A stretch of DNA of 63,748 nt, counting the filler, from Intoshia linei (Eukaryota; Animalia; Orthonectida): assembly GCA_001642005.1 (NCBI GenBank). It is 5 parts of 5 records of this genome, joined end to end, with 100 filler letters (N's around TTAATTAATTAA, not from the genome) between each part and the next. Parts side by side here need not be neighbours in the genome. Positions count along the whole stretch, not along the records: positions 1 to 31,962 come from LWCA01000334.1; 4 more parts are not named here. One strand, given 5' to 3'. A model generated the notes under the pieces. It was not told where the DNA came from. It ran no database searches and saw only the letters and a program-made list of their open reading frames with translations. This document shows, piece after piece, positions 1 through 24,900 of the stretch. Made by a program: the position numbers and the translations under genes. Position 1 is the first letter of the stretch; each line of letters begins with the position of its first letter.

Positions 1-2582
1 AAAGTTTTATTAAAATTTTCCACTTGCCCGTTACTTTGTGGATGATAATTAGCAATAAAACAATGTTGAATATCCGTAGATTGTAAAAATTAATTAAATT
101 CTGTTGATGCAAATTGTGGTCCATTATCCGATATAATTTTGAAAGGGATACCTTCTCTTGAAAACACTCTTTTTAAAAATTTTATAGTTAAAGATGTTGT
201 AGGATTAGTAAGCATTTTAACTTCAGGGTATTAATCAATTAACACAATTGCGTATTTTTTTTCGTTATTGGAAAACTCCAACGGTCCAATGTAATCAATG
301 CCAATTGTATGCCATTTATGAGGAGGATATTCAATGGGTTTAATTAGAGATTTTAATAATTTAATTGTTTTAGAACTACTACTACAAAATTTACATAGTT
401 CTACGTAATTTTCAATCATAGAGTTCATACGTGGAAACCAATAGTATTTACACAATTGTTGTTTACACGATGTAATTCCTGCATGGCATTCACGGGATAT
501 TGCCATAGCTTTATTACGTAAACAAACTGGTAATATAATACGATGCTCGCTTCTATATAAATAATCGTCATCTTTCCATAATTCATCTCGAATAGAATAA
601 TATTTTATTTGTATTTCACTCATAAATTTCTTTTGAAGCCAACCTTGTGTCAAGAATTGTTTAATAATTAATATTTCTTCATCTATGGAACTTTCATTAG
701 CTAATTCGGACAATGATAATAAACTTTCTTCGCATGAAATTTGATGTACATAAGCTAAATCAATAATTTCTGGTACGGGTTCATAATTGGGTAATCTTGA
801 AAAGCATCAGCTACAACATTTTTATTTCCGGAAATATATTCTATATCGTATTGATATTCTCTCATAAGTAAAAACCATCTAGCAATTCTTGCCGCTTTGT
901 GCCTATTTTCATAGGATGTAAAAAGTGTTTCCAATGCTTTATGGTCAGTCTGCAATGTTACTCTTCTACCCCATATATATGAGTGCCATTTTTTTGTACA
1001 TACCACTATTGCTAGTGCCTTCCTTTCTGCAGTAGAATAGTTACGTTCCGTTTTTGTTAAAGTACGTAAAGTAAAAGCAATTGTAACTTCCGTGTTTCCT
1101 TGTATTTGCTTTAAGACGGCACCAACCCCCATATTTGATGCATCAGTCTGAATAATTATTTTGTCCTGAGGTAAAAACGTGGCTAATCTGACTGTGGACG
1201 AAATATACATTTTAATGTCATCAAAAGCTTTTTGGCATTTGTCATTCCAGTGGAAAGTAACTCCTCCTCTTGTTAAATTAGTTAAAGGTTCACATATTGT
1301 AGAAAAGGTAGGTATAAATTTTTTATAGTAAGTGACTAAGCCTAAGAAACTTTTTATTTTAGTTTTGTCAGTTGGATTTGGCATTTTTTCTATGGATTTT
1401 ATTTTACTAGAGTCTGTAGATATACCGTACTGAGATATTACATGTCCTAGAATTTTCAATTCTATGTGCCTAATCATGCATTTATCTAAATTTAAGGTAA
1501 CATTGTACTTTTTAAAAGTATCTAGAACGGCTGTAAATGTTCTATCATGTTCTTCAACTGAATGATCATAAATAAGTATGTCGTCCAACATATTGCTCAC
1601 ATTACTTATATATTTTAAAATAGTAAAAATAAATTTTTGGAAAAAAGATGGCGCAGATGCAAAACCGTATGGTACTCTTTTATATTGATATAAACCAAAT
1701 TCTGTAATAAATGCAGTTAAATATCGTGAATTTTTGTCTAATTCAATTTGATTATAAGCTTGTTTCAAATCTAATTTTTAAAAAAATTTACATCCATTAG
1801 TATTATTAAATATTTTATCAATTAGAGGTAGAGGATATGTGTCAATTTCTATATTTTTATATAAATTTCTTAAGTCCACACATAATCTTATATCACCATT
1901 TTTTTATTTATTATTATTATTATTGTTTTATTTATTCATTTTTTTAGATGCAACTACGATAGCACTTGTCCATTCGCTTCTATCAATTTGTTCAATTATG
2001 TCCGTTTTTAATAATTCATTAATCTTATTTTTAACTTTATCATATAGTATCGAGGGTGTACGGTGAACTTTAGCTATAACAGGCACATAATTTTTTTTAA
2101 CGTAATGGTTAATTTAAAATCATTTACTTTAGATAATTGTGAAATATTTTCCTCTGTTTTGGTACTTATAGAATTAATTTTATTTAAATAATCAATGTTT
2201 CGATTTAGCAAAATAAAGATCGTATTTAAATCAATTAATATTTTTAATATTAAATCTAAACCAATTATAGGTTTACAAGTATTTTCTACTAATTGGAATG
2301 TATGTCGACATTTTGATTCATTGTATCTAACATCTGTGAACACCATTTTGTTTTGAGTTTGTGTCCACTAAATGACGTTAAGATAAGTGAACTAGGCTCA
2401 AAAGTATATATATGTAAATATGATTTTAATTTATGTGGTATTATAGATATACTACTACCAGTATCAACTAAAAAATTAATTGGGTAATTATTAATTAAAA
2501 TTTGAATATATTTAGAACCTTCATATATAGCACTTTGATAATTGAGATTTTTGCAAATTTTTAAAGTGACCTTTTTTACCAC
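1..2582 (-). pseudogene. pol: Retrotransposon Pol (aspartic protease, RT, RNase H, integrase), frameshifted
   Basis: Protease FLVDTGSSISII; RT YKRVPYGFASAP and MLDD (normally YLDD); RNase H QTDASNMGVGAVL and TDHKAL; integrase H-x-G...CxxC, IGIDYIGP, ISDNGPQF, YHPQSNGQVE. Confidence 0.93.
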
Positions 2583-3237
2583 AATTTATGCACTGAGCAT
2601 TTCTTGCTTTGCATATTTTGTAATGTGTGTTATTATAAGAGTTTCCACAACGGTAGCAAACCAGGTTTTTTACTTTTTGTTGAATATTACAAACTATCGG
2701 TTTATTTTCAACAAGATGACATTTTGCATCAGTCACTATTTCATATTGGTAACATACTTTACGGCATAATTTTAGCGTTAGGTCGATTTCAATGGATAAT
2801 AATTGGTTTGTAATCATATCAATGCCACAACTAAATACTAATTGATCACATACTACTTGATTTAATTCATTTTTATTGTAGCCACGTTTAGCAACAGCTT
2901 TTAGTCTACTAATATATGTAGAAAAATTTTCGTTATATATTTTTTTCATGTTTCTTAATTTAAATCTTTCAAGTATTGGTTGGCTTTTCTTCCATTCTAA
3001 AATGTAAGCTTTTATTGACTCGTAACTATTTTTTTCATTTTCATTAATTTCATTGCACAATTTCTGCCAAGCATCTACACCAATCAAATTTTGTAGTGCT
3101 TTAATTTTAAAATTATCTTTCAATTTATCTTGAAATATCAAATCAATGTATGGTTCACAATTTGAAATCCATTCAGCTGGTTCCATTAGCAGTTCACCAT
3201 TAATGTATAATATTGATGGTTTATTGAAATTGTTCAT
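2521..3237 (-). pseudogene. gag: Retrotransposon Gag with a double zinc knuckle
   Basis: CYRCGNSYNNTHYKICKARNAQCINCGKKGHF is the Mag-type tandem CCHC pattern. The ATG at 3237 lies just after the PBS. Confidence 0.85.
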
Positions 3238-3239
3238 TG

Positions 3240-3251
3240 TCGTCGGCGCCA
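3240..3251 (-). promoter_or_regulatory. Primer binding site of the gypsy element
   Basis: TGGCGCCGACGA begins 2 nt after the LTR end ...TACA; TGG is complementary to tRNA CCA. Confidence 0.7.
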
Positions 3252-4257
3252 ATTGTAGTATTGAAGATTATAATTGTAATTGTACAACGTGTTGTTAAAG
3301 TATTTATTAATAACCTAACTTTCTCACTACTTCTATATTCTCTAGGATACCACATATATAAAAAGGATTAAAAAAACCCTGGGGCAAAGCACTTTAAAAT
3401 ATGAATAATGAGCAAAATTTAATTTATTTTGTATAGTAAATTTCATAGTAATAATTATTTTCAATAACAATTAATTTTCAATTTATTTTTTTTGTATTTA
3501 TTCAGTTTTCTCATTGGAATCGGTTTTTTTGTCAATTCGGCGTTCATGATTCGCTAGACGATAATTTTGCGCATCTTATTAGATATTAGTTATTGTGCGC
3601 GATATATTGTTCAAAACTTTAGCTGCAATGATTATTTACTTTTTCATTTTTAATTTTAGTCCAAAATTTGAAAAATATTGGTTGATAATATATTAAAAAT
3701 TATTTTTCACCGGTAATGCGTAGATTTCTGGGGTTGAAATTTTGTATTTATATCAACTGGAATAAGCTCTATCAGAATAATTTTTTTTTTANAAAAATTA
3801 TTTTTCACCGGTAATGCGTAGATTTCTGGGGTTGAAATTTTGTATTTATATCAACTGGAATAAGCTCTATCAGAATAATCTTTTTTTTAATTGTCCAATA
3901 ATTAATTATTGCACATTTTTTGTTTTAATAAAATAGTTCGAAATAAAAAAATCTGAAAATAACATTTTTAATAAAACAAGACCCTCGAAAAACTGTGATA
4001 GAAATATGCTATTTTTAAAACTCGAACAGACATACATTTTTAACTAAGTTACTTTATACATTATATACATTTATACATATGTATTATATTTATATATTAT
4101 ACATTATATATATTTAAATATTACATTTATATACTTTGTATTGCAGTAAAATCAGTAATATAATAATAAAATTAAATTGAAGATATAGTTAATAAACTTT
4201 TTATCGTGTAAATAATTTAAGTAAATATTTACAATTTATATAAAATACAGTATTCAT

Positions 4258-5747
4258 ATGAAAATTCTAGTCATGAGGCATCAATTTTTTATACTATTAA
4301 TTTCGACAGTGTGTTATTTAAGTAATTTTATTGATGTTTTATTTTTAATTTAGGTGAAAGTTATGAAATAGACAATCTTATTCCTATAGAATCATGTAGT
4401 AAGATTTTGTATAATAATTTTTATAATTAAAATTTGTAATAAGTAAGGAATTATTTATTGACGCTTTAAATATTTTAATATCATTCGATATTTACTTCCA
4501 ATCCAATATTTACATTTTTTAGTCAACTGATAATCCAATTATATAACTGAGAGTAATTTAAATAGAATAAAGCAAATATTAAAATTAACACATAAAATTT
4601 TTAAATGTTTCGACTATAATTATAAATGATAATTTCTTAAATTGACTTAAATAAAACTCCTTCTAAAGAGACCAGCCTTAGCGACAACTTGCCGTCAAAA
4701 ATCTTCAAGTTTAAGAGTGATCAGTATATATTAATTTTTAGCAACATATCAGAACAATTCATGCATCTATAATTGCATGAAAGGAGAAGTTATGGTGCAA
4801 GTCAAATACCCAATTTTGGGATTGGGAGAAAATTATGTACGAAAAATTATTTTATTTGAAATATAATTTTATTTATAATATATTATAGAGATTTAAACTT
4901 CAACACGATATAGTAGAAGAGTGTCGTAAATATACGTTTACACTTTCCAATCAGCCACATTTACATTATTTTAAATTAACTTTCTACTATGCTTTGGACA
5001 GAGATAATATTGGATTAATAGATGTACATTACGATGTTCAAATAACTAAAAGTCATAAAAAACAACGCGTCTCATTATCGAGTAAAAAATTTTTGAAAGT
5101 TGTTAAAGATCGTATTAGTCATTATGAATGTAATGGAACAATTAGCGATGTTAATACTTTTGATTACGTATATATTTTAATAAAAAGTGTTAATTGTCTT
5201 TTAGGGAACTTTTACTAAAATATATTTGAGTATAATAGTGTATGATACATTTTACGGTTTATCCAATGATAGGAATCACAAGGATGGTAAATAATAATAG
5301 TATTTATTTAATATTGTATCTAGTCGTACACTGTGCCAATGGTTTTTGATTAATTTCAAGATTAATTTTTTTTAGAGTACAACCCACCATCGTCTATTTT
5401 GCCTCTTGGAATTTCGCCTAATAATACTGGTCCAATTAATCAAAAGATTATTGAAAATACATGTTTTTTTAATCATTATTTAAAACTACAGTATTCTCTT
5501 ACTATTTTTCCAAATATGGAAAATGTATGTTAGTAATATTGTTAGTAAGTTGTTAATAAACACATTCGTAAGTTTTCCAAATTATTTAAATTTGAAAATC
5601 TTAACAAATTAGAGAGAATACTGTAATACACGGTGCGACACTGAAAAATGTAACATTTTAAAATATATATAATTATAATCTTCTCAGAACAGAGAGAAGG
5701 TAGTTATTCCACTTTTCATATCCGGGATATTTACATTAGTACTTTAA
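4258..5747 (+). CDS. Orphan multi-exon secreted or surface protein (signal peptide, Cys residues, hydrophobic C-terminus)
   Basis: Starts MKILVMRHQFFILLISTVCYLSES. Consecutive in-phase GT-AG mini-introns from about 4670 to the TAA at 5745-5747, including an 18-nt exon at 5324-5341. The junction between about 4400 and 4670 could not be resolved. Confidence 0.65.
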
Positions 5748-7959
5748 CTCAAATGAACTTATTTGTTTAATTTCATTATTTTGAGTATTTAAAATGATAT
5801 TTAATTTTGAAATTCATGCCACAATATTCATTATTTGCGTTGTCATTTTATCAATTTGAACAGTGATTGTATGTTAATAATAAATTAATATTTGGAATTT
5901 ATTAATTTATTATTATTATCACAATAAAGATAATATACATCTTCCTAAATCGTACTAATCAAAGGAAAAAGTAAATCAAGTTGTCAATAATATTTATATC
6001 ATACAATATTACAGTTTTATTTATCAAAAACTATCAAATGTATGAGTTTATATGGTTGTATTTCCTTTGATGGGTTGCCCATGTTTTGTACACCATTTCT
6101 GTTTTTTTTAATTCATTTCTTAGTTCATTAATTTTGATTTTACGAAAATCATTTTGAGTTAACTCTTTATAATAATAAACTTTATGTATAGTTTTCGGGA
6201 TTAATTATGGGGAATTCAAACATCATTAAAAACCTAAATAAATGAGCTAGAAGTAAATTTAAGAACAAAATGGTCCACAAAGCATAATAAACACATCAAA
6301 GGAATTACCAACATAATTATCCATAGAAACACAATTAAAGCTGTTATACATGAAATAAAGGTGTATTTTAAATTTATCCTAAAATTTTTGTCATTCATTT
6401 TTTTTAGGATAAATGCTTAATTTTTTTTTGGTCCAAATATACACTTTTCACGGATATATAGATGTAATGTCAGTTTAACTACATTATAATATTATCTGGA
6501 AAAATATAATATTATAATAAATATTTACTTATAGTCGCACCGTGTTATAATAGAATATCATATATCAATTATAATTAAAACGATGATGATTTTATTAGCT
6601 AGTAAATTGCATATAAATTTAATTTTAATTAATACATTGATTCTTAGTCTGTAAATTTATTGCTAAATTATAATATTAATATTTCATGTGCCTAATTATG
6701 CAGAGTCTTCATGTTTATTCGATTATAATCGAGATGTCTGACAAAAATCGAAAATCCCTTATCCCTTAAGAGTTGTTAAAATTGGATTTTTTATTTTTGG
6801 GTTGGATTAAAAGGTTTTTTACATAAAATTTGTTAAATTCGGATTATTTCAAAAAAATATCAATAAAATTGAATTTTTCTATAAGACTTTGAAATGGTAT
6901 TTTTTATTAAATAATATTAAATTTTATTAATGCTACAACGAAATTTCAACTACAGTGCATGCCAATAATATAATTACGAATTTGTATAAAAATTGTTAGA
7001 ATTTGTAATTATACTAGGTTGATTGTTATGTACTAGAGTAAACTCTGTTATCAAGAACAGTTTTGAGTTAAATTGGTTGAGAAACTGTACTTTACAAAAA
7101 AATCAAATTAATAAAATAAGTTAATAAAAATTTAATATTTAGGGGCGAGTAAATTTTATTATATATTTTATTTTTATTTTACATGTCATAAATATAAATA
7201 TAATAAATAATTATAATTAAACTCATGTTAATTAACATTTTATTACAAATATATAATAAATTGTATGTAAAATTTAATATTTTAAAATAAAACAGTAATT
7301 GTTTCAAATTTAGGTTCCTACCATTAAATTTTAAAAAGAATATTAAATGCTGAATAAACTATTGATTTTCAATATTAATTATAAATTTATAATTTAAACA
7401 TTTCAATGTTTTTAATTTCGACTTTATCGACATCAATGCTATTATAATAGCATAAACTTTATGCCATAAAGTATAATTATATTTTTAGTATGTAATTAAC
7501 AATCCATCTAATTAAAATTTAAATTACATCAATCATACAACCATTAGTGTATGTCACGTAATGCCAACCAAATCAAATGTATGTTAATTTTGAGGTTATA
7601 TTTGAAAATTATTTTTTGGGGCGTTTTCTAATGAAATAATTGTTACTCATCCCTCCAATTATTATCTACAAAATTATTAACAAAACAAATTGTAAACAAA
7701 ATCTACATTTCTTATTTAAATGAAAGAAAACGAGTAATATTTTTCAGCAAATTTTTCAAAGAAATGAACTACTGTTTCAGATAGACTGTAGATTTTAATC
7801 TGAATAAGTGACGACTTCACGATCAAAAAAGCATTTTAGTATTCATATATTTTTCTCAACCAATTTAGCATATTTCAGCAGGAACACGTCTCCAATAGAG
7901 ACTCTCCATTCATAATGCTCCAATATAATTTTCATTTTGTTACAGTGTGTTATATATGA

Positions 7960-8400
7960 TCCTTACTTATATACTTATATACACTGATACTTACTTTAAA
8001 ATCACAAACAATACCATAAATTTAAATTTAAAAAAAATATAACTTCAGGGCCAAAACCCCAAATTACCCTTTTTTTTAATAATAACAGGTCTAGAATTTA
8101 TAAAAATTTACAGATGGTACAGTTTATCCTGTTAATACACACCATAAATTTCAATCTGAATAAGTGACGCTTTCACGGTCAAAAAAACATTTTAGTATTC
8201 ATATATTTTTTTTCCGAAATATTTTATTAAAATAAAAAATGTGAAATAAAGATCTGAAAATTAAAAAAAAGATTTCTCTGATAGACCTTAATCCAGTTAA
8301 TATAAATACAAAATTTCATCCTCAGAAATCTATACATTCCCGGTGAAAAATATTTTTTAATATATCATCAACCAATATTTTTCAAATATTTTGATTAAGA
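7960..8400 (+). mobile_element. Non-autonomous Helitron, 5' part
   Basis: Starts A|TCCTTACTTATATA; near-identical to 11402-11845. Confidence 0.75.
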
Positions 8401-8542
8401 TAATGATTATTTAGATATGATAATAAAATCACTACAAAATTACTTTTTAGGATAATTGGTACATCACATTACATATAAAGTTAAAATTATTATACCATTC
8501 GTACCGAACGATTTGATACGTCAAAAATAAAATAACTTTTAA

Positions 8543-11500
8543 TTACATTTTCTTATTCATTAAAAAAGAAGTGATTTTTTTCCTAAGCTGACTGTAACTT
8601 GATAAATGACATGCATCCATTTTATTTAAATTCATTGAATTGAGTGTTTTTATATCAATTTGCAGAGTAATAAAAGACGTACCAAAGATTATTCCTAATG
8701 TTGATATATCGTTTTTTGTTTTTATATTAGAATAAAAGTTTTCAATTAATTGTTCTTTAGTTATTGCTCCAATCCAAAAGCATATATAATTTGCATTTTT
8801 TTTTAAGCAGCTGATATAATTTTTTAAGTAAATTAGTTCCTCGTAATTACGTACACAAGCTATGACTTTATAAAAATGAAAATTTTTGGACCAATTGGTA
8901 ATCAATTTGAAATTATTACCAGCAATACTCTAAATATATTATTAATAAAAGTTGAAAAATTTTTACCTTGAAATATTCAATTTCGTCTTGGAATAATGCA
9001 ACATAAATTTGCGATGAACATATAGTATTTTCGTTTATTGACGTCATTATTTTGATTAAGCAAGTTGTAGAAATTTCTTTATGTTCGATTTGAATCATCT
9101 AATGATCATATAAAATAAATTAATTCATTAGCAGTAATATTTGTATATAAAGCTGATATTTCAAACTTTTACACCGCGTTGCACCCTCAGATTATTTACG
9201 ACAATTGTTTGTGATTATGACGATAATTATATTGTTATTACATTATTTATAACTTATAAATAATGTACCTTATCAATTCATAAAAGACACGACCTTAATT
9301 TTTTTTTAAAATTTAATTAAAAAGTATCAAAATATCTACATTTTCCCAGACATGACTATAAAACCCACTTTTATATACTTTTTTTTTCATTGTTAAAATC
9401 TCGTAAATTTCATACTTACATACAAGTTAGTTTGTTTCAGGTATTCAAAAGCACAAAAGATTCTCAATAAAAGATAAAATTATACTAATTTAACAGTAAT
9501 TTGGAATTGATTTATTAATGTAAATTTATAATTGTATTTAAAATTAATTTAAAAAAAGATACAGCTTTCTAACCTTTGATAAAAATATATAAACCTCGTT
9601 TGTGTAATGAACATATTCCTCAGTAACTATTGAATCTACTTTGGTATGAATTTGTCCACTTTCAGTGGAAACAACAATTGTATCATTTTGGCAAATTTCT
9701 CCATTAATAACAATTGCATTGATAGCGGTTCTTCCTTTAACCTCTTCAATACCTAATGTTATTGCTTCTAAACCCTCTACGTACGTCATTTTATCTTTCA
9801 TTTGGTTTTGACACATAATGCTTAATTGTAGCAGCACATTTCCCATGCCATCGCCATGTGTGGTTGAAACTGGAATAATTGGGATGGGTCCATTATTGCG
9901 ACCAAATAATTCTCCATCCATATTCTAAATAAATTATTATTAAAGTACAAATTTAATAATTACATGATTAATAATTATTAATAAAAATTACTATAGATAT
10001 TATAATAGTACAGTCAACCTGTATACCATGAACACTAACTTTAACATTTTCTTAAGTTCAATACCTAGTTTTATATCAACATTATAATATAATTCAACAT
10101 ATAATTCGATATACATTTTAGTCAAAAAAGTATATTTTAGTGCTCAAATTGGTCTGATGTTGGTTAAAACTCTAAACTGGGGTGTTCATTAAGTCCAGGT
10201 CTGACTTTGGTATAAAAATTACATAAGATCTCAAATCTTCATTTATTAGTAAAACAAATTTTTCCAATTTGAATTGAATAGATACAGGTTGACATTGAAA
10301 TGTTTTAAAAATGTCCATATTCGGATATGATTGCCATTCGTGAATAGAATCGACAACAATAATGCATTTAATATTATATTTTTTACATATCGTCATATTC
10401 TTTTGCATTTCAAGGCTGAATTTTTCTCCGTATTTCAGAACAAAGATTATTACATCAAATATTTTGTGATAATTCTTAAAATTTCTAAAAATGTTGTTGA
10501 TAATAAACGTGTAATACATGTATTTACATTTTATCTTCGAGATATGAAATGTTTAATAGTAATATCGCGGGTATTTTAATTTCATCTTTGTTGTTAACCA
10601 TATATGTATTCTTTTTAATAAACTCTGATGATATTAATGTCGCTCCGAATTCTCGAATTATTTTCGTTTTGACAAACTCATTTCCTATCATCTACAATCT
10701 TGTATTATATTATTTACATTATTTTTAATGCCATTTTGTACATTTACACTGTAAAATATTATTTTTTTATTACAATTATACTAGCTTAACTGTGATGAAG
10801 TTGACTCTGTCGGGCCAACTTTTTAATTTTAAAACATCATTACCGATTGCTTATTTTATTAGACTAAAAGTATTATCTTAACATCAATAAAATGATGGTT
10901 GCGTTGAATAAACAGATATAATATTCGTTGATAGTTTTAAACTTCACCGACACTATGGAATTCTATACAAAAGTCATGTAATGCCTCTCAAAAATTCAAA
11001 TTGTTCTAAGATTAACTCATATTCACAAAAAATTGAATTTGAGATTGAATTTGCTTGAAAACATGGCTATTGATTGGCCTCTGTTCTTTTCTAATGAAAT
11101 TAGATTTAATTTGGACGACCCAGACGAACTATCATACTTTGGAGACATACGAGACTGTCTCCATTGTCGATAATCAGGCTACAATGTTATAGTGGAGGGA
11201 TATTGATATAAACATCATTTGGTATGAAAGGTAAATTCTGATATTCAAACTAAGTGTTAGAACATATAGCTGTTTGGGAATTATTTACTGATTTGTCTCA
11301 ACCAATTTAGCATATTTCAGCAAAAACACGTCTCCAATAGAGACTCTCCATTCATAATGCTCCAATATAATTTTCATTTTTTTGCAGTGTGTTATCAATG
11401 ATCCTTACTTATATACTTATATACACTGATACGTATTTTAAAATCATAAACAATACCATAAATTTAAATTTAAATTTAAAAAAAAATATAAATTCAGGGC

Positions 11501-13338
11501 CAAAACCCCAAATTACCCTTTTTTTAATGAAAACAGGTCTAGAATTTATAAAAATTTACAGGTGGTACAGTTTATCCTGTTAACACACACCAAAATTTTA
11601 ATCTGAATAAGTGACGCTTTCACGGTCAAAAAAACATTTTAGTATTCATATATTTTTTTTCCGAAATATTTTATTAAAACAAAAAATGTGAAATAATTAA
11701 CGGTCCAAAAATTAAAAAAGAAAATTATTCTGATATAAATTAATCCAGTTTATATAAATACAAAATTTCATCCCAGAAATCTACGCATTCCCGGTGAAAA
11801 ATAATTTTTAATATATTATCAACCAATATTTTTCAAATATTTCGAATTAAAATAAAAATGAAAATGCAAATTGATCCTACAATTTTAAAAATAAAGTGCA
11901 ATTTGTAGTCTTACACATTTCCAATTAAGAAATATGAGTGAAAATCTATATAATTCATTCCTTCGGAATTTGTTTCATTGCTACGCAATTTTTAAATCTT
12001 AAATTCTCATTTCCAAAAACTTTTGTTTAAAATTTAAACTAAAACTACAACAACGATTACTAAAAGTAATACAACTTTGTTATCATCATTTTTATATTTA
12101 TTACAATCCTTGCCAATATTAGTAAAATTCACCTGAAATATGTTTATAAAGTGCTGATTCCGTTAATTATTGATACATAATTGATAAATATATGATAATA
12201 TGTATATATATAATATAATGATAAATAATTGATAAATATATATTATCACATTGTAAAATGACAAAATAGGTTTTTATAGTTTTATTTTTTCTGAAATTTA
12301 TGCTATTTATGACAATTTTTAAGATTGGACTGTTTTTACCTTATTTTTAATATTATACACACATTCTGTCTAATAAATTAAAAAAATGGGATAACAATTG
12401 TTCTTAAAATTTCTTACGCAAATGTTAACAAACAAAAAATTAAGATGGAATAATTCACTTTAAAGTAAAAAGTAATGTGATATGACGGTTCCACCTGAAA
12501 CTAGTTTGGGAACCACTCCTTTAAATGATTGATAATAGTGAATAGTAGGATTTTAAAGTTAGATTTTCAACGTGAATTTATTTTTTTTAATAAAACAAAA
12601 ATGTGCGCTTGGTAGAGCTAGGTGTTTGTACGTAGTACATAACAGTCAACCTAGTATATTTATATATATAGTAACGTAATTGTGGGCATAATTATATCAT
12701 AATATTATTAACTATCATAAATTACCATATTTATGAAGTTATATTCGTTAGGTTCATTCTCAATCACTCGTACAATAGGTGATCTGAATTGTTTTAAAGC
12801 ATCTTTATTAGTTTTATAGCGTTTATTAATCCTATGGTGAATGTTTGGATCAATTTCGTCCATATTAATTGGTGTTGATCGTAACGGAATGGCTAAAAAA
12901 TATAAAATAATATATTATTGAGCATCATTATATAATAAGCTTTATACGTCGTTTCGTGTTCCAAATTGTTTTTTCACTAGAATCGGAGGTGTCCTCAATA
13001 GTTATTTCGGTATTTTCAACGTCATTTAAATCAATTTTTAAATTTTCAAAGTTTTTAGAAATTTTTGTATCCGCATTTACACATGAATTTTCAGTAATAA
13101 TAGACCACTCTGTTTCATCTGATACACTGGAAACACTTCTGGTGAATTCTACTTTATTGTTCGTAGGGTTAAAAATAGTATTTTTAATTTCAATTTTATT
13201 ATTTAAGTCTTCTATTTCAACACAATTTTCATTTATATGCAATGCGTCCTCGTCTACATCTTGGAGTTGGTGTTTGATTTCATCCTGAAGGTCTTTCTTG
13301 CGGTGAGATTTTTTTTGAATTTTAAAAAATTTTATCAT
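8543..13338 (-). CDS. Divergent eIF5B (IF2-family) paralog, about 610 aa, with degenerate GTPase motifs and no domain IV
   Basis: Exons 13338-12948, 12892-12726, 10691-10528, 10484-10223, 9924-9595, 9098-8967, 8929-8543; all GT-AG and in phase (1833 nt). Colinear eIF5B-like blocks: FRSPIVRVI, REFGAT, IKIPAILLL, PVSTTHGDGMGN, AIVINGEICQNDTIVV...GQIHTKV, HKEI...VALFQDEIEYFK, IGAITKEQL. Confidence 0.85.
10950..11390 (+). mobile_element. Degenerate Tc3/Tc1-like transposase fragment inside the eIF5B-like intron
   Basis: LFSNEIRFNLDDPDELSY resembles Tc3 FSDEKKFNLDGPDG; many lesions. Confidence 0.6.
11402..12654 (+). mobile_element. Full-length non-autonomous Helitron
   Basis: A|TC 5' end; 3' hairpin (TGTTTGTAC-GTA-GTACATAACA) followed by CTAG|T; no TSD; about 15 related pieces in the window. 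Confidence 0.85.
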
Positions 13339-15650: not shown

Positions 15651-15910
15651 TCAGGGGTTCCCAAAGTGGATGATATCGCCCCCAGGAGGCGATTAATTCA
15701 GTTAAGAGCGATTATAAAATCACTGTATACCCAAAAACATAACATAACAGTTAACCTAGTTATACATAAAATAAATGTAAATATGATATTTAATATGACA
15801 AGTTTCCCATTCTATAAGATTGATTATACATTGTCATTACGTAAATAAAGTAAATTAGGAAAAGATATAAAAAAATGAAATGTTTGCTTAAATATTTAAT
15901 AATAAATAAA

Positions 15911-18900
15911 TCAGGATAATTTATATACAAAAGGCTGTCTTTTTTTGAGGATAAAGTTTCTGTTACTTTCACACATTGATGAAGTAAATGCTTTGATTAA
16001 ACTAATTGACTTATTCTTTTTGGATTTTTTTTGGTCGTCCTTTCCTTTAGGTTTATCTAAAATAAATAATTAAAATGAACGAAAACACAATACATGAATA
16101 TGACATGACATGGTGATCAATATTTAACGACAAGATGGTAATAAAACACATTTCACCATTCATCAGTTATCGTCAACGAACTCTTTATGTCAGTGATTCA
16201 AATGAAATAACCTATTAAAATGTAAAAAAAAACCTAAAGTTTCATCATTCAAACTGTATTTACTATCCAACCATTTAGCATGATCAATCTTTAATTCGTT
16301 GTTAGATTCCAATGATTTATTTAGCGGTTTAAGGTTTTTGGAAAAATTGTAATTATAAGATGTAAAAATATTTAAATTAGTTTCTGAGCGATGCAGCCAT
16401 TTATTATTATCATCTTTAAAGGATTTATCAATATTTTGAAATTTTTCATTTATTAATTGAGAATTTTTATGTTTAGGTGTAAAAGCAAAATTTGTCAGTG
16501 CATTATTTGTCAATTGTCCATTTTTAAATAATTGTTTCATTTTACCATTTCTAGTTGCAAATTTATCAAATTTATTATTTTTATTTTCATTATTTTTAAT
16601 TTTTCGGTTAAATGAAATTTTCAAATGATTTTGACGAATCGGATACTTGTTTGCATATTTAGGACTGTTTACATTTGAGTATGATAAATCTTTTGGTTCA
16701 TTATTTAGTTGCATTATACTTGTTTTGCTTTTATATAGTAATTTTTCGGGTGATTCATTTTTTGAAAGTTTTATATCGTTTGATTGAGGTAATAAATATG
16801 AATAAATTTGTTTTGTATTTTTAGGTAGATAGGGGTTATTTGTGGATATTGGCGTCCCATTTGCACTGTTACTTTCGACTCTATCGATTTTTGAATCGTG
16901 GTTCCTCCAGTTGGGTAATTTCTTAATTATAATTTAAATTAGCTCATTAAATAATTGCTTAATTATTAATCTTATCATAATTATAGATATTTTTAATTTA
17001 CATTCACTTTTTAGCCATTTGAGCTGTTTTAGGGTAAGTTTTTTCTTTTTAAAACGGGTTCTAAAATCCTTAAAATTCCCCAAAATTAATGGGAAGTAAC
17101 TACACCCTTTGATGCAAAAACACGTTTTAATAAAAGTGACTATTTCATTTTGAAATCAAAATATATTACGTTTAATGTAATACTATACTAAATAGTATTT
17201 TATTAAAATTTTCAAATAAAAGAATTTTAAATTTTAAATTTAAAGTTTCGCAGATGAAAGTGTTTTATTATGCCTATTAATTTGCCTTCTATTGTATAAA
17301 ATGTCACATGGTGAAAATAACTAGAGGTTGAAAAATCAAAAAGGTGTCAATTACCTCATTATTTTTGACTATTTTATATTTCAATTTTTCTGTCGTCGAA
17401 TAAACCTCATTTAAATCTACATTTTGTGAATTATCAAGTTTTTTCTTTTTAATTGATTGTTTTGAATTTTTTCCAAATTTAGCTATCGCATTTAAAATTG
17501 CTTTGTATGTGGATTGAGGTTTATTTATAAAGTTTTGATCAGCATTCATTTTAACCTGTTTTATTTTGATTATTTTTTCTTTTTTATTAATTTTATCATC
17601 ATCTACTATCGTTCCACTCTTACTATCCAGCAACATGGCTAAATGTAAAATATTAGTTTGATTAAACGGAAATAAATCAGTCGCGATCAAATACTTCGAC
17701 TTGTTGACTGATAAACTCAAAATAACACACAAAAACATGTGATTTATTAAATAGGCTAAAAAATATTTATGTGCGTCTGGGTGCGTGTAAACATTTACTA
17801 AATTTGGAATATTTAAATTTTTCGTTATCAAAATTATACAATGTGTTAATTAATTAATTGCCACTAATTAATAATTTATAAATTTAAATGATATTAAAAA
17901 ATTACACGATAAATCTGTGGACTTGGTGACATTGATATTATTTAAAGTAGTGTGTTCCTTTTTATTAAAACTGAAGACAAAATTATCATTATTTTTAATA
18001 GATTCATTCATATGTTCCAATTTTTCATTAAGTTGTTTAATTTTAAATTTTGGACTATTATTTTCAAATTTTTGTTTTATAGATTCGACATCACCTGATT
18101 TGGGTGTAATAACAGTCAAATCTTTTTGAATTTTAGTCAATTTTGATATAATTTCTTCTTGTTTTATACTCTTTGATACAAATTTACTTGTATAGTTTTC
18201 CAATTTTTCCAATTTTGTTTTTTCTTTTAATGAATGTATTTGAACACTTTTGCTGGGTCTCTATTTTAAATTAAAAATTAATTATATTTACCTTTATAAT
18301 GTAAGATACACTAGTATGTTAAAAAGTATTTTTTTTCATACATGTAATATGTCATAAAAATTTTTATTGATACTAATATACTAGTATATTAGTCTATTTG
18401 TTTGCTTGTCGGTTTGTTTGTCTGTGTGTGTTATCGTTTATTTCAATACCTAACAGTCCTAGAATTTTAAAAAATCCACATTTCTACTACATTTTTTTTC
18501 GGGTGTAATTAAGATAAATTTCAATTTCAAAAACTTACATTTTATTGCCCAGAAGAATTGTATCAGTGATTAAAAATAAATAATGGAATACAAAATATTA
18601 GTAATTTTATATATATTTATCTAATATTTTTATTTAATTAACATAATTAATTGTATTATTTTATAGGTGCCTAAGATTTATGTCGCTCGGAATTTTGCAA
18701 TTGTAATTAAAAATACCTATATTTCATGAATTATTAAAAATTTTTGATAGTTTTTACTTTTTTAGGGTTTTTAAATATTTGTTCTTGATTGTACACTAGA
18801 TATGATATAAGAAAATGTCTTAAATCATGAACCAGGAGTATTTAAATTAATTACCATTGGGGTGCCTAAGACTTATACCGGGTACTGTAAATTTTTATGT

Positions 18901-21900
18901 AAGATTTTATTTTTTTGGTAGAATTAGAAAAGTCCGCTCTCGGTAGAGCTAAGCGTTGTTTGTAAGAAATACAAAACAGCAAAGTAGTACATTATAATAT
19001 TCAATTATAATTGTTTAATCATAATCAAATAGTTACAGTCTATGTCCTTATTAACGGAATTTTTGTTGGCAGAAATTCCATTTTAACGGACTTTTGAATT
19101 ATATATTTTTTCTTAACGAATTTGTATGAACCAAAAATTCCTTTATTAAAAATTTTATCTCTAAAGCTCTATAATCGATTTTTTTGACTATCATAAATAT
19201 AAACTAATTTTTTTTACTATTTAAAAGTCAATTTGTTACATTTTTTATCAAATTTTTAATAGATATTAAACTAGATGGCGTTAATTAGAAATAATTATTA
19301 ATTACTATCATTGTGGAAATATCATTTTTAACTTTATTTTATTTCTGTAAATAATTTAAAATTGATAAAATTTTTCATGGACCCTAAAATACTGATGTAA
19401 ACCCTTGATAATGTATATTACATGGTCTTGTATTATTCAAAAACTCATAATAACAAGAAATATGACCATTTAATGGTTTTTATTTAAAAAAATTAAATTC
19501 CGTTAACAAGGGTGTTACTATGGCAGAAATTCCATATTAACGGAATAACGGAATTTTCAATTAATAAGGACTTAGCCATTATTTATATTATACAGAATTC
19601 AATATACATTTATTATGTTAATAATAAATTTTTTTCAAAATCATCAATTTCTTGAATCTACCTATATATAGTTTACCAAATGTAGTCTACATTGTCTCAC
19701 AGATTTTATATTTACAGTAAATTATTAGTAAATGAAAATTACTGGTGTTTTATTAAATTTAACGGAACAGTTATTTTTGTTTTTATCAATGAAATTTGTA
19801 AATCTTTCTCTTTCTCTGTTATCATCTTGAAACGCATTTTTACAGTCATTTAAATTTTGTATATTCAAACGCGCTCTCATTCTATTTTTTATGCAGTCTG
19901 TAGGTATTGGTATTGCTTCACCTTGTAAAATTAAATTTGTTCCACTGTATTGTGGAACTGCTACAGGAACTTGTTTGTAAGCTAATTCAAATCCCCCTGT
20001 CGAGCAGTTTTTATCTTGTCTTCTGTCAAGCACAACTATATTGTATATTTTGAATTAAAGATTTGAAAAAAATTAATTATGTAGTATAAATTTTAGACTC
20101 TAAAACAGTGATTCCTAATTTGTCGGTATTAATCACGAGTGGGTAATTTGATATTTTTCATGGGTAATCGCAAAATTTTTTTATTTTTTTTAATTCGCAT
20201 GGACACACAGTAGGGTGTCACATTTATTTTAAAATTTACGATTGTTACTCAATAATGTTGTCATCAAATTATATATCAATACATACCCTTAATAACGTCT
20301 TCTAAAACTATTGGGCATAATTTTGCTGTTACGCTGGTGCTATACGACATGCTTGGACTTGAATTAATTTCAATCAACCATATTTTGTAGTCTTCAGATA
20401 ACATAAAATCCGCTCCATATAATTCAAATTCATTCTATATTTAAAATAGAAAAAAAATTTAAATTTATATCGAAATTGTTGTAACTTGTTATATTTTTTC
20501 ATTGCCCCCATATTTGAAATTTTTTTTAATCAACTCTAGACAATCCCTGTTATGTATCATACGATGGTTTCATTTAACCTTTAATATGAAATTTATGAGT
20601 CGATCCGTGTAATATTCGACCGAAAAATGCAAATCTGATTTTGGGAGTAGGTTCCAATCCCTAATTGTACATTATACGTATAGTAATTAGAATGTATATT
20701 ATAGATTCTACATATTAATATTTATTACTTTTTGATAATCAATGCTACATTGTGTTGATTGAATAGATTGAATTATAGTTTTTTTCATCGTTGGATAAAT
20801 TTTCTCGCTCCACAAATTTTCGACACCGATAGATCTACCGTATAATTTTTTAATTTAATTTTATTTTTAATTTGTTTGATATTGATGTTGCTAACTATTT
20901 AAATTTTAAATTAATTAATGTCTACCCCAATTAACTTGCTTTCAATATTTATATTTTTTATTAAATGTAAAAACAATTTTATTAACGATTCTCAAGGTGG
21001 TCCATGTGGACACTCCGGGTATAGGGTGGTTTAAATTAAAGATTACAAAATTATGAAAAAATTTTAATCATATTAAATTTTGGTAAGTAAACAGTCAAAA
21101 CTATTTTATTAAAAAGTAGGAATGAATGTGACGATTTAAAAAAACTCTAATCTTTTTTAGATTGTTGAGATGGAAAAAAATTAACAATAACTACTTACTG
21201 TAAATATTTTTGAAATTGCTGACGATACCACATGTTATTTTCTGGTAAATTTGGGTGTCTATTTGCATTATTTTTATATCGACTTTGTATAGCATTGTTT
21301 GTAAGATGAATAGCCTCTTCAAAATTATTTAACGTAAATTGACTCGATGAAAATCTGAGATAAGAGTATTTGTATATCCAAATAGTTAAAGGGTTCCAAT
21401 CTGTAATTAAAAACCACTGACGTATATCAAATTTTGTTCCGTATATCAATAAAGGGCGCTCTAAAAAAGTATAATTATAGCTATAAATAAAGCTGATGCA
21501 TTTTTAATTTTGATACTACATATTGTATACGGTATTAGTAATACAGTATTACTAATTTTAAAATACATAATGTATTAAAATTTTTATGTACATACCTATA
21601 TATTTTTGAATGATGTATTTAGACTCTTTTCTGCAGAGTAAATTATTATCGACTAATTTGAGAATATCGTCTAGCCGATCATAACATATTATACCTCGAC
21701 CTCTGGATTTCGCACCAGGCTTTAATATCCAAACATTTTGATACCCGTCTATAAACATTTGCTGATGCTGACGGCCATATTCTCTTACAACTGAATTTAT
21801 TTCGTCGTAATATAGACTTGCGTTTTCAATCAAAAATTTGTTGCTAGATACATGTATGTAAATTAGTCATTTTATAGTATAACTAGGACTATTATTAGAT

Positions 21901-24900
21901 TAAGATCAATATTTACATTTTCAATTTTTATTTTAATCGAAATATTAAAAATTATTTTTCACCGGGAATGCGTAGATTATATGAGTTGTAATTTTTTATA
22001 TATATCAACTGGAATAAGCTCTATCAGAAAAATCTTTTTTTTAATTTTCGGACCGTTAATTATTTCATATTTTTTGTTTTAATAAAATATTTCGGAATAT
22101 ATGAATATTAAAATGCTTTTTTGACCGTGAAGTCGTCACTTATTCGGATTGAATATACTAAAATGCTTTTTTAACCGTGAAGTCGTCACTTATTCGAATT
22201 AAAATTTTTTGAACTTCTAGGGCTGTTTTCATTAAAAAAAAAAGGTAATTTGGGGGTTTGGCCCTGAACATATAATTTTTATAAATTTAAATTTATGATA
22301 ATGTTTATGATTTTAAAATCTTTATCAGCCTATATATTTTTTTAAATTCTCCAACTTGTTTTATTTTCAAAAAAGGACAATTGGGGTTTTTGACCCGTAA
22401 GATGTGAGTTTGAGATGTTGAAATTTATCTTATTATATGTCCCGGAAAAACTGTAATTGAAATGTGGACTTTATAAAATTCTAAGACTGGTAGTTATTTC
22501 AATAAACGATAACACAAACAAATATTGCATAGTATATTATAATATGCTATGATTATATAAGTACACACACACAAAAAATATTGCGTAGCATATTATATAA
22601 GTAAGGATTTACACCCGAGATTATTACAAAATAATCGTAATCAAATTTAAATTAATTTTTATTTTAACCGTAAAGGTTGTAATTCCATGTTTCATTTTTT
22701 ACCAATAAAAGGGTCTCATGATGTTACATCCAGGGTGTATGCAGTTCACAGTGTGTAAATTATTTTGAATCATATACATAAATATAATTAATAAATTACT
22801 GGATAACATTGTAATAATTGTTAATGAATATACTCCACTGTTTATCGGACAATTTGTGATTCTAAAATATATTTAAGAGAAAATCATATTACTTACTAAT
22901 GTTTACATTTTTTGGTTGTTTAACATTTACGGTTTTGGGTACAATCCACTTTCATATACTTGTTTAAAATTATAGACAATTCGAATTTACATAAAATTTT
23001 TGATAAGCGAGGAATTAACTCAAAGGATTGAACAATTTGGATTTTACTCAAAAAGATTGATAAATTTTTAGTTTTCATAAAATAGCTGGTAAAAGAGGAT
23101 TTTAATCCCAATTATATTGTTAAATTTGGATATTTCATAAAAAGGTAGGTAAATGTTGATTTTAACCGTGAAGGTTTGTAAAATTGGATTTTAAATAATA
23201 AAAAATTGATAAAAGTGGATTTTAATCACAATTATATTGTTAAATTTGGATATTTCATAAATGGGTAGGTAAATGTTGATTTTAAATAATAAAAAATTGA
23301 TAAAAGTGGATTTTAATCACAATTATATTGTTAAATTTGGATATTTCATAAATGGGTAGGTAAAAGTTGATTTTAACCATAAAGATTTGTTACAATGGAT
23401 TTTACACCAAAAATGGTTTGTAGTTTATAAATTTGAATTGTTTTAAAGTGTTAAATTTGTACTATTAATTTTGTACTAATTAATAAAAAACCACCTAGTT
23501 TGTAATTTTATAGGTTATATTTTCGGACGAATCAATGATTTGTGTGATAGGCAACTAATATAAAAATGTGCGTACAAGATCATGCGAATCATCAAGGCCA
23601 AAATGCATCATACAAACAGTAAAATTTTTCAACAAAAGTAATGGTTTGAGGGCTATATCTTCTGTGGGAATGGGTGAATTACAGATTTGTGAAGGTATAA
23701 TGAACCAGCATACCTATAAAAATGTATTAAAAAATTTTTTTGATGAAATCACACAACGGCACATTGATCAGAAGTATATATTCTAACATGATTCCGCTCC
23801 ATGTCCCAAAGCCAAATCTGTAACTTCATATTTTCAAAATGAAGGGATTGCTGTTCTTGAATCGCTCGGAAACTCCCCAGATATAAACCCAATCGAAAAT
23901 ATTTGGGCACAATTGAAAGAAGAAGTTCATACAATTCCAATAAGATCAAAATCGGAACTGATTATTCGCCTACATACAGTATGGAACAATTCTTCTAATT
24001 TGAAAAAACTGGCAAAAGACGTATTAATAGTATGCCACGGAGAATTATGGCTCTCATACATGCTGAAGGAACTGTTACAAAATATTAATTAATTCCAATT
24101 AAACATAAATATATGTGTAACTTATATTCAAAATTTTATTTAATTTCATTTATTCATTAGTGAATTAGTAACAAAAGAATATGTAAAAAATAATTATTAT
24201 AATCTTATGATCAACACTGTATATAATTTTCATGGACCCCCAAAAAAATACTGTGGATCCAAGAGGTCCACATAAACTCCATTGAGAATGGCTGGTGTAT
24301 ATCATAGAATACACAGACGTGTGAAGTGAAATTTCTGTGTATAGTATAGAATACACAAACAGTGAAAGGGTTAAATCACAAAAATGTTTAATAATGAATC
24401 CGTCAAAAATCTGACATTTAAGGTTGATTATTGACGATTCTGACTGTACATTATGTATACATTTGAATTTTTCATATTTACAATTGAATAAACCCATTTA
24501 AATAAATTTTACAATTAAATTACATCGAATTCATCATCAATATCTTCGTTTCTGATAGATCTAAGATATCTACGACATTGTCTCATAGCCATTAATATGT
24601 ATCGACTTGATATGTACAAAATTTTTGAATTTTTAACTAAATTAAATTAAATTATTTCTAAAATTAAATCAAATCTTTGGAACCCCTATAAAAAAAATTA
24701 AACATTGAAGATAGTATTCATAAACTTGTGTTTCTTTTTTATTTTTTTTTTTCAAATATACAAATTAATAATAAGTTTTTGGTGAATAAAACATTGGTAA
24801 TAAAACTTGATTTTTTAAAAGTAAATTTGATAATTTTATTGATCTACACATTGTGTAATCGCTCCTTCAAAAAATACATTCTAATGCTGTGATTTTATAA

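Follow-up and report, generated by a model that had tools for sequence, protein, structure and literature searches.

Can an animal genome keep a copy of the translation initiation factor eIF5B whose product no longer has the residues for binding and hydrolyzing GTP? This question is raised by a locus of the orthonectid parasite Intoshia linei, located on the minus strand at positions 13338–8543 of the DNA stretch analyzed here (the window; 63,748 nucleotides including filler, joined from five records of assembly GCA_001642005.1). Positions 1–31962 of the window represent LWCA01000334.1, which is one contig of the 41.6-Mb, 3520-contig assembly of this organism (~25% GC). A preliminary description of the locus had proposed an intact-looking eIF5B paralog that lacks the GTPase motifs and domain IV. 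Our analysis identifies the locus as an intron-containing, partial duplicate of eIF5B, and its sequence indicates that the product is probably a pseudo-GTPase derived from a translational GTPase.

Gene structure

The gene model was rebuilt by reading the exon–intron junctions base by base, followed by a screening of all GT/AG combinations for reproduction of the database protein. The locus corresponds to the Intoshia linei gene A3Q56_03138, which consists of seven exons and six introns and has a stop-free coding sequence (CDS) of 610 codons. The translation of the spliced CDS (1833 nt) is identical, letter for letter, to protein OAF69103.1 (610 aa; UniProt A0A177B629), which is assigned to the same species by NCBI and UniProt, is labeled as ‘hypothetical protein’ in GenBank, and is the sole member of its 90% cluster. 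The spliced model of seven exons and about 610 aa that had been suggested before is thus exactly reproduced by a gene that is already public, and the public record does not recognize the identity of the encoded protein.

Introns 1 to 6 have lengths of 55, 2034, 43, 298, 496, and 37 nt and phases of 1, 0, 2, 0, 0, and 0, respectively, and all are of the GT..AG type. Exon 1 (13338–12948) begins with the ATG at 13338 and encodes aa 1–130 plus the first base of codon 131. It contains an acidic and K-rich N-terminal region with the motif SDETEW, whose counterpart in the N-terminal exon of the canonical Intoshia eIF5B gene (see below) reads STVDETEW, and matches that exon weakly (tblastn, E = 0.022). 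Intron 1 (12947–12893) splits a Pro codon and is followed by exon 2 (12892–12726; aa 131–186), which encodes the FRSPIVRVI strand and then a dead P-loop. Beyond the long intron 2 (12725–10692), exon 3 (10691–10528; aa 187–240 plus two bases of codon 241) extends from a remnant of switch I to a dead switch II and matches its canonical counterpart with E = 1.7e-5 (tblastn). The remainder of the G domain is encoded by exon 4 (10484–10223; aa 241–328), which lies between intron 3 (10527–10485) and intron 4 (10222–9925). Exon 5 (9924–9595; aa 329–438) comprises the end of the G domain, including the G5 region, and most of the domain II beta-barrel. It is the best conserved part of the gene (E = 1.6e-8 to eIF5B in the PDB; tblastn E = 2e-16 to the canonical exon) and is modeled by AlphaFold2 (AF2) with a predicted local distance difference test (pLDDT) score of 88–96. 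Intron 5 (9594–9099) precedes exon 6 (9098–8967; aa 439–482; tblastn E = 4e-5 to the canonical exon), which adds the end of domain II and a linker helix. Removal of the short intron 6 (8966–8930; GTAAAA..TTTAG) results in a residue-for-residue eIF5B spacing, and its retention leads to a stop in the frame at 8919. Finally, exon 7 (8929–8543; aa 483–610 and the stop codon TAA at 8545–8543) encodes a degenerate, domain III-like tail that ends about where helix 12 begins in eIF5B.

Homology to eIF5B and predicted fold

OAF69103.1 was aligned to human eIF5B by phmmer over aa 196–486 (E = 3.5e-24). In hhalign, a profile of 35 eIF5B sequences from which OAF69103.1 had been excluded matched aa 163–545 with a probability of 99.8% (E = 5.6e-28). 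Scanning of the whole protein against Pfam returned no family even at E ≤ 1, with GTP_EFTU (PF00009) not scoring, and an exon-by-exon scan gave only sub-threshold chance matches. Based on the profile and pairwise comparisons, OAF69103.1 belongs by descent to the eIF5B/IF2 family of translational GTPases, and together with the stop-free 610 codons these matches support the earlier proposal of an eIF5B paralog with an intact frame.

The AF2 model has pLDDT values of 85–96 across the G domain and domain II (76–95 over aa 165–370) and additionally contains a confident N-terminal helix of 55 residues. Domain II, which shares 32–35% identity with eIF5B, is modeled with pLDDT values above 90. When the AF2 model was compared to the PDB by using Foldseek, a check that had been suggested in the preliminary description, the top 40 matches were all e/aIF5B structures (best E = 2.9e-27), with a template modeling (TM) score of 0.81 to eIF5B crystal constructs of the G domain and domain II. 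As the AF2 model leans on the eIF5B alignment supplied to it, the agreement of the ESM Atlas model, which is independent of a multiple sequence alignment, is important: this model aligned to aIF5B/IF2 clusters over aa 161–610 with a TM score of 0.54. These models predict that the product has preserved the eIF5B fold in its G domain and domain II.

Loss of the GTPase motifs

The motifs were compared in alignments to 35 canonical eIF5Bs, where each of the earlier readings of G1 to G5 held. Only one of the 16 invariant positions in G1–G4, the Asp of G4, is kept in OAF69103.1. The strand preceding G1 is still recognizable (FRSPIVRVI compared to LRSPIxCVL in eIF5Bs). The P-loop itself (12738–12761; aa 175–182) reads ENEPNEYN instead of GHVDTGKT and has none of the seven invariant residues; one amino acid is deleted before intron 2, and no Gly, Lys, or Ser/Thr remains. 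In G2/switch I (10638–10667; aa 195–204), TKIIREFGAT replaces GGITQQIGAT with a substitution of the Mg-binding Thr by Ile, and four amino acids are deleted just upstream of this remnant. G3 (10539–10553; aa 233–237) reads NISYL instead of DTPGH and has lost the Asp, the Gly, and the catalytic His. In G4 (10349–10363; aa 282–286), the sequence IIVVD stands in place of ALNKxD, where a deletion of three amino acids has removed the Asn and Lys and left Asp286. The G5 region (9841–9867; PVSTTHGDGMG, compared to PTSAxTGEG in eIF5B) is retained. Elsewhere in the protein, several structural residues that are invariant in eIF5Bs (I197, Q306, P346, S348, G354, G403, G418, and E512) are kept.

OAF69103.1 does not pass as a working eIF5B GTPase on any of the features tested (G1–G4 and a GTP_EFTU match), and the protein is probably unable to bind or hydrolyze GTP in the canonical manner, which would make it a pseudo-GTPase. 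One could object that the protein still binds or hydrolyzes nucleotides, either through non-canonical residues or through unannotated exons that provide G1–G4 and domain IV. The retained G5 region and G4 Asp are in favor of this objection, and the 2-kb intron 2 is roomy enough for a hidden exon. However, a tblastn comparison of each exon of the canonical gene to the full contig of 31,962 bases revealed no second match to G1, G3, or G4 and no domain IV, so that the alternative exons considered in the preliminary description as a possible refutation were not found there. Moreover, Gly, Lys, and Ser/Thr are all missing from the P-loop, which is one residue short, and splicing already yields a product that is colinear with eIF5B. 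From its sequence, a working GTPase is largely refuted, and we regard it as extremely improbable.

The C-terminus

Approximately 438 residues follow from G1 to the C-terminus of OAF69103.1, compared to about 583 in full eIF5Bs, so that the protein ends ~145 aa early. The stop at aa 610 leaves out helix 12, and domain IV (PF14578) had no tblastn match anywhere in the 31,962 bases. The situation is less clear-cut for domain III. The profile alignment reaches aa 545, which covers only the first beta-alpha-beta unit or first half of this domain. The domain III family of Pfam, IF-2 (PF11987), did not match OAF69103.1, and exon 7 alone did not match the eIF5B alignment from which OAF69103.1 had been left out. 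The AF2 model has pLDDT values below 50 for aa 498–610, and the alignment of the ESM Atlas model to aIF5B extends to aa 603–610. Retention of domain III is weakly supported by these data, and the C-terminus of the protein lies inside a degenerate domain III or at its end. The colinearity with eIF5B that had been described for the entire protein is therefore confirmed for the G domain and domain II and can be demonstrated only in part, up to aa 545, for domain III.

A canonical eIF5B gene and the origin of the copy

The 41.6-Mb genome contains exactly two eIF5B-like loci. Besides the gene described above, a separate canonical eIF5B, for which a search had been recommended in the preliminary description, was found on contig C126 (plus strand, ~22000–26400; 4096–8375 in the numbering of locus L004). 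It has the intact motifs GHVDTGKT, GGITQQIGAT, DTPGH, and NKVD, a domain III (Pfam IF-2, 63.6 bits), and domain IV. Its 594-aa core, obtained by joining the exons by coordinates, is stop-free and shares 54% identity with Drosophila eIF5B across 581 aa; the last exon, after position 8375 of L004, was not located. OAF69103.1 shares 26% identity with this canonical protein over 351 aa (E = 4.7e-33), and its match to Drosophila eIF5B is slightly lower (24.6%, E = 3e-26).

Five of the six introns of the duplicate (introns 1–5) occur at the same codon and in the same phase as introns of the canonical gene. In both genes, intron 1 interrupts a Pro codon at an identical position and in an identical phase. 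Intron 2 is homologous to the canonical LLDK|M intron. Intron 3, which is in phase 2 in the codon after ESF/EDK, matches the canonical GHESF|S intron, and the positions of introns 4 and 5 are also the same. The canonical NK|VD intron has no counterpart in exon 4, and its site coincides exactly with the deletion of three amino acids in G4. Intron 6 is unique to the duplicate, and its length of 37 nt is not suspicious because the canonical introns are mostly 38–57 nt long, three of them having 38 nt (one further canonical intron, at 5870–6772 of L004, has ~900 nt). Since five of six introns share their position and phase with those of the canonical gene, the gene arose by duplication at the DNA level and represents an intron-containing partial copy of eIF5B.

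Exon 1 of the duplicate corresponds to the canonical exon with the DETEW motif, and the K/E-rich canonical exons upstream of it have no counterpart in the duplicate. Since both ends of the canonical gene are therefore missing from the copy, domain IV probably did not belong to it at any time. Thus, the absence of domain IV noted before stands, and the sequence is better explained by partial duplication than by the later removal that had been assumed.

Probable selection on the reading frame

The 610 codons of the CDS contain no stop, compared to 57 and 68 stops in the other two sense frames, and the introns contain ~82 stops per 987 codons. Based on nucleotide composition (28% GC in the CDS), the probability that 610 codons remain free of stops is 2.8e-25. 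For the 128 codons of exon 7 taken by themselves, the same rate per codon gives a probability of ~7e-6 of being open by chance. All insertions and deletions relative to eIF5B are in frame, all six pairs of splice sites are canonical, and no marks of a pseudogene (stops, frameshifts, lost splice sites, or lost introns) were found in the 610 codons and six introns. GC content is 34% at first and 25–26% at second and third codon positions.

The stops in the other frames, the chance probability of ~3e-25, the in-frame indels, and the intact splice sites argue for selection and would not fit an unselected drift to 26% identity. Long-term purifying selection has probably kept this frame open, and the gene would then encode an expressed and selected pseudo-GTPase. 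The earlier suggestion of selection instead of decay is in line with the open-frame statistics and with the conserved intron positions. This case for selection is built on sequence and not on expression. In three small sequencing runs of unspecified library type from one study in 2024, 25–35% of the words of the stretch were present. A search with exon 5 for short spliced fragments from transcript assemblies yielded none, and no contig on record encoding OAF69103.1 was found. When exon 5 was compared to 1.84 billion representative proteins, OAF69103.1 was the sole strong match (E = 3.6e-64), and a homolog search with OAF69103.1 returned only the protein itself and one distant eIF5B.

Possible function and alternative explanations

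In eIF5B, the switch regions couple GTP to the movement of domains III and IV, and domain IV holds the acceptor end of Met-tRNAi and the tail of eIF1A. Docking on the body of the 40S subunit and on the GTPase center of the 60S subunit is mediated by domain II and the G domain (Roll-Mecak 2000; Kuhle & Ficner 2014; cryo-EM). With its early C-terminus, the Intoshia protein should be unable to position Met-tRNAi or to bind the eIF1A tail. Its conserved domain II and G-domain surfaces may still dock at the eIF5B site, that is on the 40S intersubunit face and at the GTPase-associated center. Without a nucleotide switch, the protein would occupy the factor site or compete for it independently of GTP, and the outcome would be a regulation of subunit joining or ribosome availability instead of initiation-factor activity. 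Because the docking modules are best kept (domain II most of all) and neither a switch nor domain IV remains, we consider an expressed and selected pseudo-GTPase probable and, within this reading, put forward a ribosome-directed occupant or competitor as a tentative proposal. Going further, this nucleotide-free, ribosome-docking duplicate of eIF5B might throttle subunit joining or translation, perhaps in a stage-specific manner (plasmodium versus short-lived free adults), and the IF2/eIF5B lineage would then have its first pseudo-GTPase, but as a whole we consider this scenario unlikely. The roles of a brake or hibernation factor, which had been proposed in the preliminary description, are speculation.

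Several observations weigh against a functional, ribosome-directed pseudo-GTPase. The switch regions, which contact the sarcin-ricin loop, have been rewritten, and the C-terminal 110 aa are poorly modeled and not independently recognizable. The AF2 and Foldseek results are partly circular, as the input alignment of AF2 consisted of eIF5Bs. Compared to the canonical gene, the copy is shortened on both sides, and its introns of 2034, 496, and 298 nt are much longer. A repeat has inserted into intron 2, the gene lies amid transposon remnants, and no ortholog of OAF69103.1 was detected in the 1.8 or 5.8 billion proteins searched.

Some of these observations would also be compatible with a protein that has left the ribosome and in which the fold of the eIF5B G domain and domain II serves, without nucleotide, as a scaffold or adaptor, by analogy with Ski7; new interactions would then come from the long helix at the N-terminus and from the novel C-terminal part. 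The extreme divergence (26% identity to the canonical protein), the rewritten switch I and II surfaces, the unrecognizable C-terminal tail, and the confident 55-residue helix predicted by AF2 fit such a change of role. It would also agree with the view that stoichiometric mis-interaction disfavors ribosome-binding duplicates of IF2 (Atkinson 2015). However, it is domain II, the main module in contact with the 40S subunit, that is best conserved in both identity and model confidence, and no data point to an alternative partner. On balance, a scaffold appears rather unlikely. The gene could also be a non-functional relic, namely an unprocessed pseudogene from a partial duplication that is silent or recently dead and whose open frame was annotated by an automatic predictor. 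The truncation at both ends, the loss of all catalytic motifs, the lack of a Pfam match and of an ortholog in the protein collections searched, the inflated introns, the repeat insertion, and the transposon-rich neighborhood all agree with this explanation, as does a younger analog in Caenorhabditis remanei (see below) that resembles a decaying partial duplicate. Yet dozens of stops would be expected after neutral drift to ~26% identity at 28% GC, no indel breaks the frame, and the six GT-AG pairs are intact. The 128 open codons of exon 7 exist only in the frame for which the 37-nt intron has to be removed, and the pattern of the hydrophobic core has been kept sufficiently to give a profile probability of 99.8%. 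We thus consider a relic improbable. Taking all points together, a real and functional pseudo-GTPase gene derived from eIF5B is the best overall explanation, and we favor it with reserve.

Genomic surroundings

Two copies of a highly abundant interspersed repeat, which are 91% alike, were found on the plus strand when positions 7000–12190 were searched. One copy (7790–8394) is located just 3′ of the eIF5B-like gene and the other (11291–11845) within its intron 2. The repeat unit comprises ~420 nt, and both local copies carry ~130 extra bases at the 5′ end that are missing from other copies. At the genome level, at least 40 scored copies had 85–88% identity, and a first look gave 3614 candidates in 41.6 Mb.

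A broken long terminal repeat (LTR) retroelement of the Ty3/gypsy type, split into separate open reading frames (ORFs), occupies positions 231–3252 on the minus strand. It comprises a gag-like ORF with a zinc knuckle (2521–3252), an aspartyl protease (2289–2582), reverse transcriptase and RNase H (755–1768), and an integrase zinc-binding domain (231–713). At 28524–28775 on the plus strand, a sub-threshold Pfam match (E = 1e-4) indicates a fragment of a DDE_3 (Tc1/mariner-like) transposase.

Other genes in the vicinity include exons of a gene of the tubulin-tyrosine-ligase family (TTL/TTLL; Pfam PF03133) at 21195–21449 and 21558–21833 on the minus strand (E = 4e-26 and 3e-11, respectively). N/K-rich ORFs of 174, 175, and 114 aa without a Pfam match at 16190–18212, also on the minus strand, are probably exons of an uncharacterized neighbor gene; they are the cause of weak low-complexity matches to the K-rich N-terminus of eIF5B. 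K-rich tblastn matches near 15850–16060 were considered as upstream eIF5B exons and were rejected, being of low complexity and located in or near another gene.

Comparison with known proteins

The closest known system is canonical eIF5B itself, represented by the gene on contig C126 and by human EIF5B (e.g., PDB 7tql/8pj5). OAF69103.1 resembles it in the acidic N-terminal exon, the G domain, domain II, weakly in the first half of domain III, and in the predicted fold, and five introns of its gene agree in position and phase with those of the canonical gene on C126. In contrast to eIF5B, its G1–G4 motifs are destroyed, with in-frame deletions at the P-loop, switch I, and G4, and it lacks the K/E-rich far N-terminus as well as helix 12 and domain IV. 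The degree of divergence also differs, at ~26% identity between the two Intoshia proteins compared to 54% between the canonical eIF5Bs of Intoshia and Drosophila.

Ski7 of budding yeast is a paralog in the eRF3/Hbs1 family of translational GTPases that no longer functions as a GTP-hydrolyzing translation factor and serves as an adaptor between the exosome and the Ski complex. Like the putative Intoshia pseudo-GTPase, it is a duplicate that keeps the architecture of G domain and domain II, and it provides a precedent for catalytically impaired paralogs. Ski7 is described as still binding guanine nucleotides (PMC4933942). It also differs in its EF1-family origin, whereas the Intoshia protein derives from IF2/eIF5B and has no nucleotide-binding motif left. 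PseudoGTPases are G-domain proteins without nucleotide binding and/or hydrolysis, such as CENP-M and the pseudoGTPase domains of p190RhoGAP, and those described so far are mostly derivatives of Ras-like small GTPases. With its predicted G-domain fold and absent G1–G4 motifs, OAF69103.1 would fall into the class without nucleotide binding.

The IF2/eIF5B family has been described as having a single cytoplasmic ortholog (Atkinson 2015). The preliminary description was aware of no pseudo-GTPase copy of eIF5B in an animal. Our literature search retrieved no paper joining eIF5B and pseudoGTPase, and searching for the locus tag and accessions of the Intoshia gene gave nothing. Among sequenced genes, however, there is at least one further degenerate eIF5B duplicate of an animal, which is unannotated and occurs in C. 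remanei (GCK72_008971; XP_053586720.1, uncharacterized). It is nearly equal in length (609 aa), starts just before the G domain, has no domain IV, and is damaged in G1 (GRDDTEES), G3 (NK-GH), and G4 (NRFD). In contrast to the Intoshia protein, its GGITQQIGAT motif is intact and it retains 47% identity to Drosophila eIF5B. The C. remanei copy is independent of the Intoshia copy and much younger; the two proteins share only 23% identity. It could be nothing more than a partial duplicate in decay. Together, both cases demonstrate that eIF5B can be partially duplicated in animals and suggest that such events recur.

For OAF69103.1, these results provide a function-relevant annotation of a GenBank ‘hypothetical protein’ beyond the reach of Pfam classification. 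They also point to a paralog whose frame has stayed open despite the loss of its nucleotide-binding residues, and this in an animal genome that ranks among the smallest and the poorest in genes. If our interpretation is true, the scaffold formed by the G domain and domain II of eIF5B can serve a GTP-independent use, and the Intoshia protein would offer a natural variant with a dead switch and no domain IV for isolating the effect of eIF5B docking on the ribosome.

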